A stretch of DNA of 64,000 bases from contig LSRY02000036.1 in assembly GCA_001643675.2 (NCBI GenBank), forward strand, positions 1,001,638 to 1,065,637. The letters are read 5' to 3'. The DNA comes from Monocercomonoides exilis PA203 (taxonomy: Eukaryota > Protista > Preaxostyla). Positions 48,550 through 56,521 of the stretch are shown here, piece after piece (position 1 is the stretch's first letter; the number at the start of each line of letters is the position of its first letter). The position numbers and the translations under genes were made by a program. The notes beneath the pieces are model-generated. The model worked only from the letters and a program-made list of their open reading frames with translations, was not told the DNA's origin and did not search any database.

Positions 48550-51500
48550 CTTTAAAGCACTCTTCAAAATACAATTCTGATCAAAACTTATATAACCATA
48601 AAATTGTTCAAATCGATATGAGACAAAATCATTCACTTTTTGAATTTTGTTCCACACAATATTTACGATATTTTTCTCGATTATTGAATATTTCTGTAAT
48701 TATTTGTATTGTTACTGTTGATTAATAATGAAATGATTGTAGAAAAAGTCTGGAACAAATCTCAGTTTTTTTCAAAAATGCAAAAATTTTGCACAAACGA
48801 CAACATTTTTGTTGTTAAGAGCTGATGAATTTCTTGGATAAAAATGCAATCATCCATCTGTTGTTATTGCTTCACACGAAAATAACAGGAAGCTTCTCAT
48901 ATTGATTACAGAATGTACATAATCGCAGCACATCACTCAGCCAGATGTTTCATTTGTCTCGCATGAAGCGAGCATTATTTGAAACGCATACACTCTTCCT
49001 TTTATAATTTTCTCTTCCAAAATTGATTGGAAAATCCTATATATTCCAAGAAGAAAACTTTTCTAGGTGAACTGCTTTCAACAATGAACAAATGGAAAGT
49101 ATTCGTGTGACATATATTTTCAATTCATTTTATCATTTTTGCATTTTTTTGCTTATAAGGAGTCAGAATAATATGGGTAATTATTTTCGAAATTATATTT
49201 TATCTTTCAATAATCTCGGTCCGATAATTTCCCTTGGATATCAACAAAAAACATTAAAAAGTGAAAAAGCTGAATAAAGACATCTTCTTCTTTGTTTTTG
49301 ACAATTCATTAATTCTAACAACAGTTGTAATAAATTTAACATTTGAATACAAAATCTCATCCCAATAATCAATAACCTTTGAAAAAATAGCACCTGAAAT
49401 AAGTTATGAATTCAAAATAATCACCCGTGTCAAAAATTAATCACATATATGTTTTTTGTCTGCGCCTCATATCCACTGAGCAAAAACAGAAATATAATAT
49501 TTCAAAAAGCAACACAATAACTGGTTCGCTTTAAAATATTGTGCAAATCGGATATAATCATATCGGTTTTCGCACGACTTTTCATAACTGTATCCAATTT
49601 TGATTATTTACGACGTGACTTAACATTAAAAAAACAATTATTTTATTATTCATAAACAAATTTTGGGTCAATTTTTTTCATTTTTGGAAATTCTTCACAA
49701 AAACATATTTTTCAATAGAAATCACTATTTTTTATGATTTATTAGGTTGCTCAAACTTATTTGAACAAGTTTTGAAAAATCAAAAAATAGAGATTTCGGA
49801 ATAATTAATTGATTTTTCAATGAAAAAACAACCCATAATGAAATTAAATGTGATTATATGGGTGATTATTTTTCAAAAGTCGCAAATGTTTAATACTCTA
49901 ATGAATCAAAATTTTCACATTTAGCTCATATTTTTGTTTCCACTCACCAAACTTCACTTATATGGAATATATTTCTGGATAATGTTGTTTCATTCATTCT
50001 GAAGAAATTTCGTGAGTGAAAATAGAAATTTGAATAAAATGTGGAATTTTTAATTCATAAGAAAATTAAACATTTGCAGCATTTCAAAAAGAATTATCCA
50101 TATATATTTGGCCCTGTGATTATATGCGATCGAAAATGAATGAAAAATAGGCGAAATATGTTGATGCATCGAAAAATGAGACTAAACGAATGTGATTATA
50201 TTCGACGTGATTATATTTTGTGAAGACAGTACATATGTCTAAATTTTTTTGAAAAGTGACAACAGATCAAAAATATAACCCATCGTCATTAAATAATTTT
50301 CATTCCGTTTCCATTATTCAAATGATAATAAGGCATAGGTTCAAACGCGTTCCTTTTGCAATTCGCGTTTTTAAACCCTCAAATTATAACGAATTAATAG
50401 ATAATAATTATTTAAAAACTTTTTATGGACCGATTTTTCGAAAAAAATTTTTCTTGTTGAAAAAAATGATTTTTGAAAAATGACCCATAAAAACATGAAT
50501 TTCATAAATAATTATTCAAATTTTAAAGAAAACGTGATTTTTTCGCATCAGAAGTGTTTGCATTGTTATGTAAACTTATTTTATTTGTTAATTTTCATCA
50601 TTAACAATATAAATCATAAATAAAAAATTAAATTAAATATCTTTGATCTAACCCACAATAAAATTTTTTATGTCTGGAAAAGTTGAATATGCTGTTTTAG
50701 ATGAAATCGAACTCAATAGTTTGCCATCATTTCATTTTTATATATAAAATTTAACATATTATAATATGCGCACTTGCTTTATATTGAAAACAGCTTTTAA
50801 TCACAGTCACATTAAGGTGTTCCTTTTTGCTTGAATATTTGAAACCACCTAATATTAGTTCATTTACGTACGTAAAGGAACGAAAAAAGTTATAAGTGAG
50901 TCTTTAAATAACAATATTATTTATTATGCTTTTATATTTCATATATTTTATTGTTCTTTATTATTTCTGTGTTTTTTTGTATTAGATACGATTATAACAT
51001 AGTTAAATGAATCGCTTTCGCACATACATACTTCAACTGCCCAAAAAATTTCAACGTTGATTTATAAAAACAATGAATTGAATACAAGTTTGGGCGAGAT
51101 ATTATCTGATTGACAGACGAGTTGAGTAAAAATTCAAAGAGGACATGAAAAGCACTCTTTTTTTAATTATTTTAAAATTATTGTTATTTAGCGAAACTTC
51201 GTCTGTCATGTTCAGTTTTGAAAATGTTAAAAATAAAAAAATAATGGGTGCGATCATGAGCTGATATTGTTCCGGTGAGATATTTATTTATAGAGTTCGC
51301 AAATGCTGATGAACCCTGTTGTTTGCATATTTAACTTTTATATTTTCTTTAATAAATTATGCGAAAACACAAAATTCTTCTTTTTAGTGGATGAATCGCA
51401 AATCCTTTCAAAAAAGTTTTCGCTTGGGTTCTGCGCTGGAGAAGAAATCAGTTTGCATGAAGTGGATTTTCGAATAATCATAAAATTGATGGTTTGTACT

Positions 51501-51569
51501 GAGCGGATTATTTAAATGTTTGTTATTATCATTTTTTATTGTATCAACAATACTTTTGAAACAAAGCAT

Positions 51570-52330
51570 TGCACTTTGATGAATGGAAATAGAAAATCGA
51601 AGTACTGAACAAATTGACAGAAACAATATATGAATATGGATTTGTTTTTTTTTTTCCACAGAAGAATTGTTCGGTAAAATACATAAAATGATTGAAGAAG
51701 AGAAAATGACGTTGGGAAATGCTATTCTGCTACTGAAGCGTATTGGGCTTTGCAAAGTGTTGAAAGGATTTTTTTTATTTCTTTTTTTGATAATTCATTG
51801 ATGCCAAAAGATTTGAGAAGATAATTACTGACGAAAATGAGAAGAAAGAAGAAAAGAATGAAAAACTTTTAGCTGATCTTTCGAATTCCTCGTTTTTCTA
51901 TTCATTGGATTACCATCTAAATTATTTTCAATTGACAAGATCTTCCTTATGAAAGCTGCATCGAACAAAGAGGAAAGCTATAAAGTTCAGAAAGACGTGG
52001 AAGTTGCATTAACAGAATTGAAATGAATGGAGCTTATGTATGAGCATTTCTGTTTCATTTTTATTATGTTTGCTTTTTTTTTCCTTATTTCTGATTAGGA
52101 AGTGAAACAAGAAGAATATTTGAAGGAAATAACAGAAATCATCAAACATCAGCAGAAACACAGAAATCTCACAAAACTTGCCTATCAGTCTGCTTGGCAA
52201 TTTTTTATATGCAGATTTTACAACAATGGATTGTTGGAAGATACAATTGCTAATGAGATGCATTTTGGAAGAGAAGCATCAAGAAAATTGGAAGAGCCGA
52301 AAAGAAATGCGGATTGGAAGAGATGATAAT
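51570..52330 (+). pseudogene. Captured fragment of HQEHHNLTxLAYQS-family gene in left arm
   Basis: IHKMIEEEKMTLGNAILLLKRIG...; YLKEITEIIKHQQKHRNLTKLAYQSAWQF...MHFGREASRKLE. Contains frameshifts. Intron GTATGAGC...CTGATTAG (52038-52098) is retained. Confidence 0.85.
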
Positions 52331-52413
52331 AAGAAATGGAAAGAGCAAAATGAAATAATCATCAGTAGTGGCTGATAAAAAGAAGGAAGCAGCGGAAGCA
52401 GCAGAAATTAGGT

Positions 52414-54436: not shown

Positions 54437-55128
54437 ATTCTCTTTGTCTGCCATTTCTCTTGCTTCATTCTCTTTGTCTGCCATTTCTCTTGCTTCATTC
54501 TCTTTGTCTGCCATTTCTCTTGCTTCATTCTCTTTGTCTGCCATTTCTCTTGCTTCATTCTCTTTGTCTGCCATTTCTCTTGCTTCATTCTCTTTGTCTG
54601 CCATTTCTCTTGCTTCATTCTCTTTGTCTGCCATTTCTCTTGCTTCATTCTCTTTGTCTGCCATTTCTCTTGCTTCATTCTCTTTGTCTGCCATTTCTCT
54701 TGCTTCATTCTCTTTGTCTGCCATTTCTCTTGCTTCATTCTCTTTGTCTGCCATTTCTCTTGCTTCATTCTCTTTGTCTGCCATTTCTCTTGCTTCATTC
54801 TCTTTGTCTGCCATTTCTCTTGCTTCATTCTCTTTGTCTGCCATTTCTCTTGCTTCATTCTCTTTGTCTGCCATTTCTCTTGCTTCATTCTCTTTGTCTG
54901 CCATTTCTCTTGCTTCATTCTCTTTGTCTGCCATTTCTCTTGCTTCATTCTCTTTGTCTGCCATTTCTCTTGCTTCATTCTCTTTGTCTGCCATTTCTCT
55001 TGCTTCATTCTCTTTGTCTGCCATTTCTCTTGCTTCATTCTCTTTGTCTGCCATTTCTCTTGCTTCATTCTCTTTGTCTGCCATTTCTCTTGCTTCATTC
55101 TCTTTGTCTGCCATTTCTCTTGCTTCAT
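54437..55128 (-). repeat. Inverted copy of the 30-bp tandem array, 23 identical copies
   Basis: ATTCTCTTTGTCTGCCATTTCTCTTGCTTC x23 (54437-55126). Confidence 0.97.
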
Positions 55129-55209
55129 ACCTAATTTCTGCTGCTTCCGCTGCTTCCTTCTTTTATCAGCCACTACTGATGATTATTTCATTTTGCTCTT
55201 TCCATTTCT

Positions 55210-55970
55210 TATTATCATCTCTTCCAATCCGCATTTCTTTTCGGCTCTTCCAATTTTCTTGATGCTTCTCTTCCAAAATGCATCTCATTAGCAATTGTAT
55301 CTTCCAACAATCCATTGTTGTAAAATCTGCATATAAAAAATTGCCAAGCAGACTGATAGGCAAGTTTTGTGAGATTTCTGTGTTTCTGCTGATGTTTGAT
55401 GATTTCTGTTATTTCCTTCAAATATTCTTCTTGTTTCACTTCCTAATCAGAAATAAGGAAAAAAAAAGCAAACATAATAAAAATGAAACAGAAATGCTCA
55501 TACATAAGCTCCATTCATTTCAATTCTGTTAATGCAACTTCCACGTCTTTCTGAACTTTATAGCTTTCCTCTTTGTTCGATGCAGCTTTCATAAGGAAGA
55601 TCTTGTCAATTGAAAATAATTTAGATGGTAATCCAATGAATAGAAAAACGAGGAATTCGAAAGATCAGCTAAAAGTTTTTCATTCTTTTCTTCTTTCTTC
55701 TCATTTTCGTCAGTAATTATCTTCTCAAATCTTTTGGCATCAATGAATTATCAAAAAAGAAATAAAAAAATCCTTTCAACACTTTGCAAAGCCCAATACG
55801 CTTCAGTAGCAGAATAGCATTTCCCAACGTCATTTTCTCTTCTTCAATCATTTTATGTATTTTACCGAACAATTCTTCTGTGGAAAAAAAAAAACAAATC
55901 CATATTCATATATTGTTTCTGTCAATTTGTTCAGTACTTCGATTTTCTATTTCCATTCATCAAAGTGCAA
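55210..55970 (-). pseudogene. Mirror copy of the captured HQEHHNLTxLAYQS-family fragment in right arm
   Basis: ORF 55215-55439 translates identically to 52102-52326. Confidence 0.85.
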
Positions 55971-56521
55971 TGCTTTGTTTCAAAAGTATTGTTGATACAA
56001 TAAAAAATGATAATAACAAACATTTAAATAATCCGCTCAGTACAAACCATCAATTTTATGATTATTCGAAAATCCACTTCATGCAAACTGATTTCTTCTC
56101 CAGCGCAGAACCCAAGCGAAAACTTTTTTGAAAGGATTTGCGATTCATCCACTAAAAAGAAGAATTTTGTGTTTTCGCATAATTTATTAAAGAAAATATA
56201 AAAGTTAAATATGCAAACAACAGGGTTCATCAGCATTTGCGAACTCTATAAATAAATATCTCACCGGAACAATATCAGCTCATGATCGCACCCATTATTT
56301 TTTTATTTTTAACATTTTCAAAACTGAACATGACAGACGAAGTTTCGCTAAATAACAATAATTTTAAAATAATTAAAAAAAGAGTGCTTTTCATGTCCTC
56401 TTTGAATTTTTACTCAACTCGTCTGTCAATCAGATAATATCTCGCCCAAGTTTGTCATTTGCATGTTTTAAAGAAATACGAAAAAATGAGTTGATTTAAC
56501 TTTTTTAGTAGATTTGACGTT

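Follow-up and report, generated by a model that had tools for sequence, protein, structure and literature searches.

A Merlin transposon with kilobase-long inverted arms in Monocercomonoides exilis

In this study we analyzed a stretch of 64,000 nucleotides from the genome of Monocercomonoides exilis PA203 (contig LSRY02000036.1, positions 1,001,638 to 1,065,637 of the forward strand), in the following called the window. At 51093-56446 it contains a transposon of the Merlin superfamily which is 5,354 bp long and of which 70% (3,743 bp) is taken up by two inverted arms. The terminal inverted repeats (TIRs) of described Merlin elements are 24-462 bp long (PMC8101967). The locus raises the question of how such arms arose, how they are kept alike and whether an element of this shape transposes as one unit. 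We consider it likely that it is an autonomous cut-and-paste Merlin (IS1595/IS1016-like), whose passenger arms have been copied one onto the other by host recombination. The element is real and probably still mobile.

Anatomy of the element

The left terminus, GGCGAGATA, starts at 51093 and the right terminus, TATCTCGCC, which is its reverse complement, ends at 56446. Both TIRs open with 5'-GG, as in other elements of the Merlin superfamily, and the flanking target-site duplication (TSD) of 8 bp agrees with the 8 or 9 bp that characterize Merlin insertions. The 29-nt terminus occurs twice in the window, even if three mismatches are allowed, with 0 occurrences expected by chance. Since it is found only at the two outer ends, the element is not a compound of two elements. 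A compound transposon, in which two inverted copies of a shorter element enclose the transposase gene, has next to no probability: the genome does contain non-autonomous relatives (2.7-2.9 kb) that share the termini, but each arm carries the outer terminus only, the genome-wide search gave two terminus matches within the element, and one single TSD belongs to the whole unit. The coordinates of all features, including those of the relatives described below, are collected in Table 1.

Table 1. Features of the Merlin element, its surroundings and its relatives in the M. exilis genome (positions refer to the window unless a contig is named; ORF, open reading frame; aa, amino acids)
Feature	Position	Strand	Length	Remarks
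TSD, left copy	51085-51092		8 bp	CAAGTTTG; exact direct repeat
TSD, right copy	56447-56454		8 bp	CAAGTTTG; exact match of left copy
Left arm	51093-52825	+	1,733 bp	
Terminal segment of left arm	51093-51257	+	165 bp	82-99% identity across family
Pseudogenized host-gene fragment, left arm	51475-52358 (arm ~383-1266)	+		end of exon 1, ~57-nt GT..AG intron, start of exon 2
30-bp minisatellite, inner end of left arm	52414-52825	+		13.7 perfect copies
Unique core	52826-54436		1,611 bp	
Transposase gene	53178-54065	-	295 aa	intact ORF
Right arm	54437-56446	-	2,010 bp	
30-bp minisatellite, inner end of right arm	54437-55128	-		23.1 perfect copies; inverted relative to left array
Mirror of host-gene fragment, right arm	~55180-56064			
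Outer element hosting the Merlin	50332-58811			termini GGCATAGG; 276-bp TIRs, 94% identity
TSD of outer element	50324-50331 and 58812-58819		8 bp	GATAATAA; exact
C8 copy			4,167 bp	arms 1,234 bp (100%); TSD GGAGATCA, exact; transposase 83-86% identical to that of the window
C23 copy (sibling)			4,598 bp	arms 1,425 bp (99.6%); flanking 8-mers do not match
C35 copy (sibling)	C35:19250-23574		4,325 bp	arms 1,334 bp; no TSD, flanks mirrored
C36 copy				arms at least 1,091 bp (99.9%); ~5.6 kb insert in one arm only
C19 copy	C19:1094866-1105678		10,813 bp	arms 4,804 bp (99.8%); no TSD; transposase truncated
Transposon nested in C19 copy	C19:1095102-1098876 (L061:2237-6011)		3,775 bp	18-bp TIRs TAAACCTC... 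/ TAAACCTCTGCGTCACCC...; 8-bp TSD GTTTGCAT
C28 copy			2,410 bp	arms 484 bp (99.4%); TSD AAAAGTGC; clade at 62-66% transposase identity
C9 copy			~2,816 bp	arms ~970 bp (99.9%); TSD CTGCTATG; clade at 62-66% transposase identity

The outer part of the two arms is nearly identical. When 51093-52400 was aligned with 55140-56446 in reverse complement, no substitution was found. The only differences were three 1-bp indels, at 51769 and 51782 (T runs) and at 52377 (A run). Each arm ends at the core with a tandem array of 30-bp units. In the left array, degenerate units already start at about 52346.

Among the relatives compared, the first 165-180 bp are the only arm segment conserved throughout the family. 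This segment is likely the part which is needed and recognized by the transposase. Within the terminal 120 bp there is a perfect 10-nt inverted pair, TGACAGACGA / TCGTCTGTCA (51111-51120 and 51199-51208), and a second terminus-like motif, GGTGAGATATT, lies at 51274-51284, 181 bp inward of the end. Both are possible candidates for transposase-binding sites. No conservation of the subterminal motifs of the first 200 bp was detectable in the two relatives compared.

The core between the arms carries the transposase gene. Its product matches the profile PF12762 (DDE_Tnp_IS1595) with an E-value of 9e-18 and 65.2 bits, above the curated cut-off of 27, over profile positions 5-151 of 153. The catalytic residues D143 (VEIDE), D209 (TDCW) and E246 (RIESTW) fall into the three Merlin blocks, which agree with the Merlin alignment in the supplement of PMC8101967. 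D143 and D209 are invariant in an alignment of eight proteins. The N-terminus carries a CxxC...CxH motif. A protein database search gave no near-identical protein (best match 35% identical) and the gene is thus apparently unannotated in the public protein sets of M. exilis. In all five transposase-bearing copies measured, the core has a length of about 1.6-1.75 kb and consists of the gene with about 350 bp on each side.

The unique part of the arms contains a host-gene fragment of about 0.9 kb. It aligns to more than 40 genomic loci of a two-exon family at 72-77% identity, and at least 227 'uncharacterized' M. exilis proteins, named MONOS_*, match the 253-aa ORF of one of its paralogues (L008). 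A Pfam search of the ORFs of this host family gave nothing above threshold. The copy in the arm is stop-ridden. It retains the intron, which indicates that the capture took place at the DNA level, and its position in the arm does not differ between the siblings, so the capture predates the diversification of the subfamily. An origin of the 30-bp unit from the K/E-rich stretch of the captured gene was considered. The homology to the gene stops where the array starts, but no convincing alignment was obtained between the unit and this stretch.

An earlier note on this DNA, made by a model from the letters alone, had described a recently moved Merlin with GG...CC ends, an exact 8-bp TSD, about 1.32 kb of mirrored unique sequence, inverted 30-bp arrays, an intact ISXO2-type transposase in a core of about 1.6 kb and an arm share of about 70%. 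This anatomy was recovered at the positions given in Table 1, and the profile search which the note had proposed for the ORF placed it in the expected family. Two of its statements need to be qualified. The only evidence for a recent movement is the perfect TSD together with the intact ORF. The arms do contain host DNA, as the note had assumed, in the form of the gene fragment, but this is an ancestral capture common to the whole subfamily and not a recent one.

Relatives in the genome and transposition as one unit

For identification of relatives, we searched the genome assembly, which comprises 82,301,135 bases in 101 contigs. The terminal 165 bp gave 40 matches, mostly as inward-facing pairs, and about 20 relatives with common termini were identified. 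The terminus GGCGA(G/A)A is common to the clade. Statements on the arms refer to those transposase-bearing relatives which are readable in full. All of them have arms of 0.5-4.8 kb with an identity of 99.2-100%. At further loci of the clade with 62-66% transposase identity, the shortest arms measure 916 bp and the longest at least 1,389 bp (99.2-100%). In the non-autonomous relatives (2.7-2.9 kb) the TIRs are 227-464 bp long, and one of these relatives shows the TSD GAAAAAGC. Merlins of the same genome with 37-41% transposase identity have TIRs of about 35 bp.

The window copy and four relatives are flanked by five different perfect 8-bp TSDs (CAAGTTTG, GGAGATCA, GAAAAAGC, AAAAGTGC and CTGCTATG), which shows that the long-armed units transpose. 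The insertion of the window copy can also be followed at a paralogue of the outer element that hosts it. On contig C42, the match to the left flank ends at C42:108355 and the match to the right flank starts at C42:108361; the flanks (83-85% identity) are contiguous in the 200 bp examined and the 8-mer is present as a single AAAGTTTG. Since the flanks abut with a single 8-mer, the Merlin was inserted as one unit. The earlier note had suggested to look for such an empty site and for copies of the same architecture with other 8-bp TSDs. Both were found, the empty site in a paralogue at 83-85% identity and not in an allele. Short TIRs in all other family members, which the note had named as a finding that would speak against its interpretation, were not observed, as the transposase-bearing relatives have arms of 0.5-4.8 kb.

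Copying between the arms

The high identity of the arms within each copy is in contrast to the age of the lineages. For the transposase genes, synonymous divergence (dS) between lineages is about 1.0-1.2, with a dN/dS ratio (nonsynonymous to synonymous) of 0.06-0.12. For the window copy against its siblings, this ratio is 0.06-0.10. These values indicate that the lineages are old and that the transposase gene was kept under selection. A maximum likelihood tree was calculated from the left and right arms of five copies and one further right arm. In this tree the arms cluster by copy and never by side. The window copy and the C19 copy are sisters, and their arms differ by 3.3-4%, while the arms of other lineages are about 62% identical (about 38% different) to those of the window copy. 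If the arms were not homogenized, those of the window copy should differ by about 46 substitutions; 0 were observed. Old transposase lineages together with identical arms within each copy show that the arms have been homogenized repeatedly and evolve in concert.

Direct evidence for copying from arm to arm comes from the C19 copy. Both of its arms contain the same 3,775-bp non-autonomous transposon without ORF, in mirror orientation. It is located at the same site in both arms (element bases 229-236) and has the same TSD, GTTTGCAT. It is implausible that two insertions hit this site independently and produced the same TSD; a single insertion was copied to the other arm. Duplication of cargo by such copying, which the earlier note had put forward as a possibility for the arms, is therefore observed in this relative.

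These findings are consistent with the following mechanism. The DDE transposase, which moves the whole 5.35-kb unit and duplicates 8 bp of the target, would most likely recognize only the terminal 165-180 bp. The remaining arm would be passenger DNA, namely the old host-gene fragment and the 30-bp minisatellite. We infer that host recombination has time and again used one arm as the template for the other, either through long-tract gene conversion or through fold-back repair synthesis, and the passenger DNA would thereby have become part of the inverted repeat. Such copying would hold the two arms identical while the lineages diverge and would double whatever lands in one arm. It would also push the repeat inward until it adjoins the transposase gene, where selection would halt it. 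The constant core of 1.6-1.75 kb fits this inward growth of the repeat up to the point where the gene and its flanking control regions are met.

Alternatively, the arms might be regenerated during transposition itself and not by host recombination. At each move, for instance, gap repair after excision or a single-strand fold-back intermediate could lead to resynthesis or mismatch correction of one arm with the other as template. The copies with perfect TSDs in the window and on C8 have the most identical arms (100%), and for Galileo, recombination after the excision break was suggested as the cause of TIR extension (Marzo et al., 2013, PMC3573991). However, the arms of the C19 copy have an identity of 99.8% over 4.8 kb, although this copy lacks a TSD and its transposase is truncated. 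Moreover, the mirror of the C35 copy reaches far past the termini, unlike what is expected of a process delimited by the transposase, unless this contig is mis-joined. We regard regeneration during transposition as unlikely.

A further explanation would be that selection keeps the long arms alike because they provide multiple transposase-binding sites or another function, as was proposed for Galileo. The tandem repeats inside the arms, the terminus-like motif GGTGAGATATT 181 bp inward and the pair TGACAGACGA / TCGTCTGTCA in the terminal 120 bp could be read in this way, and Galileo TIRs contain secondary binding sites (PMC3688188). Past about 180 bp, however, the arms of siblings are only about 62% identical, compared to 83-86% for the transposases. 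The interior is a stop-ridden host pseudogene, a nested foreign transposon was tolerated and mirrored, and selection cannot keep 1.3 kb of neutral-looking DNA entirely free of substitutions. This makes selection on the arms very improbable, and copying by host recombination remains the explanation we prefer.

Some observations weigh against copying in a mobile and correctly assembled element. The insert of the C36 copy is present in one arm only, which indicates that copying is not immediate; this copy represents a state before copying. Several relatives, including the C19 copy and the loci L067-L069, have intact termini but flanking 8-mers that do not match, which suggests recombination between copies or turnover of the flanks after insertion. 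The read support consists of short contigs at the borders between core and arrays and comes from the same sample, possibly from the data of the assembly itself. In addition, short-read polishing of an assembly from Oxford Nanopore Technologies (ONT) reads could erase a few true differences between arms; the C23 and C19 copies and the loci L037 and L038 still keep arm differences of 0.2-0.8%.

The last two points lead to the question whether the mirror could be an artefact of the assembly or of fold-back reads. The assembly is based on ONT reads (PMC8767320), the arms of the window copy differ by homopolymer indels only and the locus is located 5 kb from the putative telomere. The C35 sibling lies in a 32-kb palindrome which touches the contig end and could be a mis-join. 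The core is covered by short-read (Logan) contigs from four runs of one sample. At both borders these contigs extend 28-29 nt into the array, slightly less than the 31 nt required for bridging. Stronger arguments than these contigs are the unique flanks with their TSD, the empty site in a paralogue, the unique core and the recurrence at many internal loci. The two flanks of the window copy are distinct and unique, the TSD is exact, and the 1.6-kb core between the arms is unique, with independent short contigs reaching both of its borders. The architecture recurs with different sequences at more than 12 internal loci, and this terminus was already present in the 454-era contigs of Lopes et al. 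An artefact is therefore extremely improbable for the window copy.

The C35 copy deserves separate mention. Here the mirrored stretch of 2,433 bp (99.9%) consists of the 1,334-bp arm and 1.1 kb of flank. The copy is located at the exact center of a palindrome which spans 32.6 kb or more (C35:~430-33000; loci L063 and L072-L077). The flanks are mirrored up to the termini without a TSD, and inverted matches with 97-100% identity were obtained for probes at distances of up to 11 kb. The left half is broken by an insert of about 9.4 kb which ends in ...CCTATGCC, and the palindrome extends to the contig start. The mirrored flanks are no clean proof of outward conversion, because the mirror continues on each side for 11 kb or more, up to the contig start, so that a mis-join is possible there. 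There are two readings of this structure: the inverted repeat seeded a real palindrome at a chromosome end, or the contig end was mis-joined at the Merlin repeat.

More tentatively, and with rather low confidence, the copying might reach beyond the element, and the long-armed Merlins of M. exilis might act as seeds for the mirror duplication of anything inside or beside them: nested transposons, fragments of host genes and even adjoining chromosome over tens of kb. The location of a Merlin at the center of the C35 palindrome is what such seeding would predict. If this is true, a mobile element would give rise, in the vicinity of chromosome ends, to large palindromes and to duplicated fragments of genes. 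It could then also produce perfect hairpin RNA of kb length which is related to a family of more than 200 genes.

Relation to known elements and surroundings of the insertion

The element shares with the Merlin superfamily (Feschotte, 2004) the D/D/E blocks of DDE_Tnp_IS1595, the 5'-GG ends, the TSD of 8 bp and the presence of only one ORF (about 300 aa). Its arms of 1,733 and 2,010 bp (0.48-4.8 kb in the clade) are outside the reported TIR range of 24-462 bp, a range which is descriptive and not defining. For M. exilis, seven Merlin families (F1-F7) have been described, with more than 100 copies and TIRs of 23-29 bp (Lopes et al., 2021, PMC8101967). A further group, 'M.sp_G1', was defined by the fact that no TIRs or TSDs were found (PMC8101967). 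The transposases of the long-armed clade are filed in this group; its siblings are found in the alignments of PMC8101967 as M.sp_LSRY01001805.1 and LSRY01000732.1. The ends and TSDs of this clade are supplied by the present analysis. The long arms explain why the published survey did not find them. In a literature search of open-access papers, no description of kb-scale Merlin TIRs was found. The clade extends the TIR length of Merlin elements by an order of magnitude, and the two arms of the window copy are 5 to 10 times longer than any described for this superfamily.

The closest parallel is Galileo, an element of the P superfamily in Drosophila (PMC3573991). It is also a long-TIR variant within a short-TIR superfamily, and the length of its TIRs is variable among copies. 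Galileo TIRs were expanded by tandem repeats, unequally between the two TIRs, and by recruitment of internal sequence (PMC3573991). They range from 18 to 1,250 bp, and the copy with the longest TIRs has an arm identity of 95% (PMC3573991). In contrast, the Merlin transposase is of the IS1595-type DDE and not of the THAP/P type, and the TSD is 8 bp instead of 7 bp. The longest Galileo TIRs are restricted to non-autonomous copies, whereas here autonomous copies have arms of 1.2-2 kb with 99.6-100% identity. Unlike Galileo, the present arms carry DNA of a host gene. The Merlin clade is thus not a new kind of mobile element, as the same phenomenon is found in Galileo of the P superfamily. It is a foldback-like, self-homogenizing Merlin clade which carries a gene fragment.

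Foldback (FB) and MULE-Foldback elements have long TIRs which consist mostly of tandem sub-repeats, a transposase of the FB/MULE type and a 9-bp TSD. The long-armed Merlin also has long TIRs, with an internal 30-bp array. The resemblance is one of shape only: the Merlin arm is mostly unique sequence, the transposase is of the IS1595 type and the TSD is 8 bp and not 9 bp. In transduplication of the Pack-MULE type, a genomic fragment of a host gene is carried between the termini of a transposon. Like Pack-type elements, the long-armed Merlin has a host-gene fragment with intron between its termini, which moves with the element. It differs from them in its superfamily, in being an autonomous carrier and in that the fragment is present twice, in mirror orientation within the inverted repeat. 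The 'ebb and flow' of plastid inverted repeats and the palindromes of the human Y chromosome are examples of arms which are near-identical despite their age, with shifting boundaries and insertions copied across. Those are fixed structures of a chromosome or an organelle; here the palindrome itself is mobile. The clade provides an unusually clean natural record of the origin and persistence of long TIRs. It also represents a repeat class which is liable to mislead annotation and assembly in the reference genome of a model amitochondriate eukaryote.

The outer element into which the Merlin is inserted has further copies in the genome. Its left 761 bp recur more than 40 times, often as inverted pairs about 220 bp apart (e.g., C22:1277169-1278911). 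This suggests that the outer element belongs to a second foldback-like family of the Merlin type. The first 64 bases of the right flank of the Merlin are matched by the C42 paralogue only. From base 65 on, the right flank (window 56447-57887) is part of a very large family of repeats or genes, with 215 first-look candidates at 84-87% identity. An ORF of 345 aa is located in the outer element at 56850-57887 and shows a sub-threshold match to a Chlam_PMP-like repeat. In the last part of the window (61001-64000) the GC content is about 0.49, the GC skew about 1.0 and the AT skew about -0.33, a composition that fits a terminal tract of TTAGGG telomere repeats on this contig. About 5 kb separate the Merlin from this telomere-like tract.

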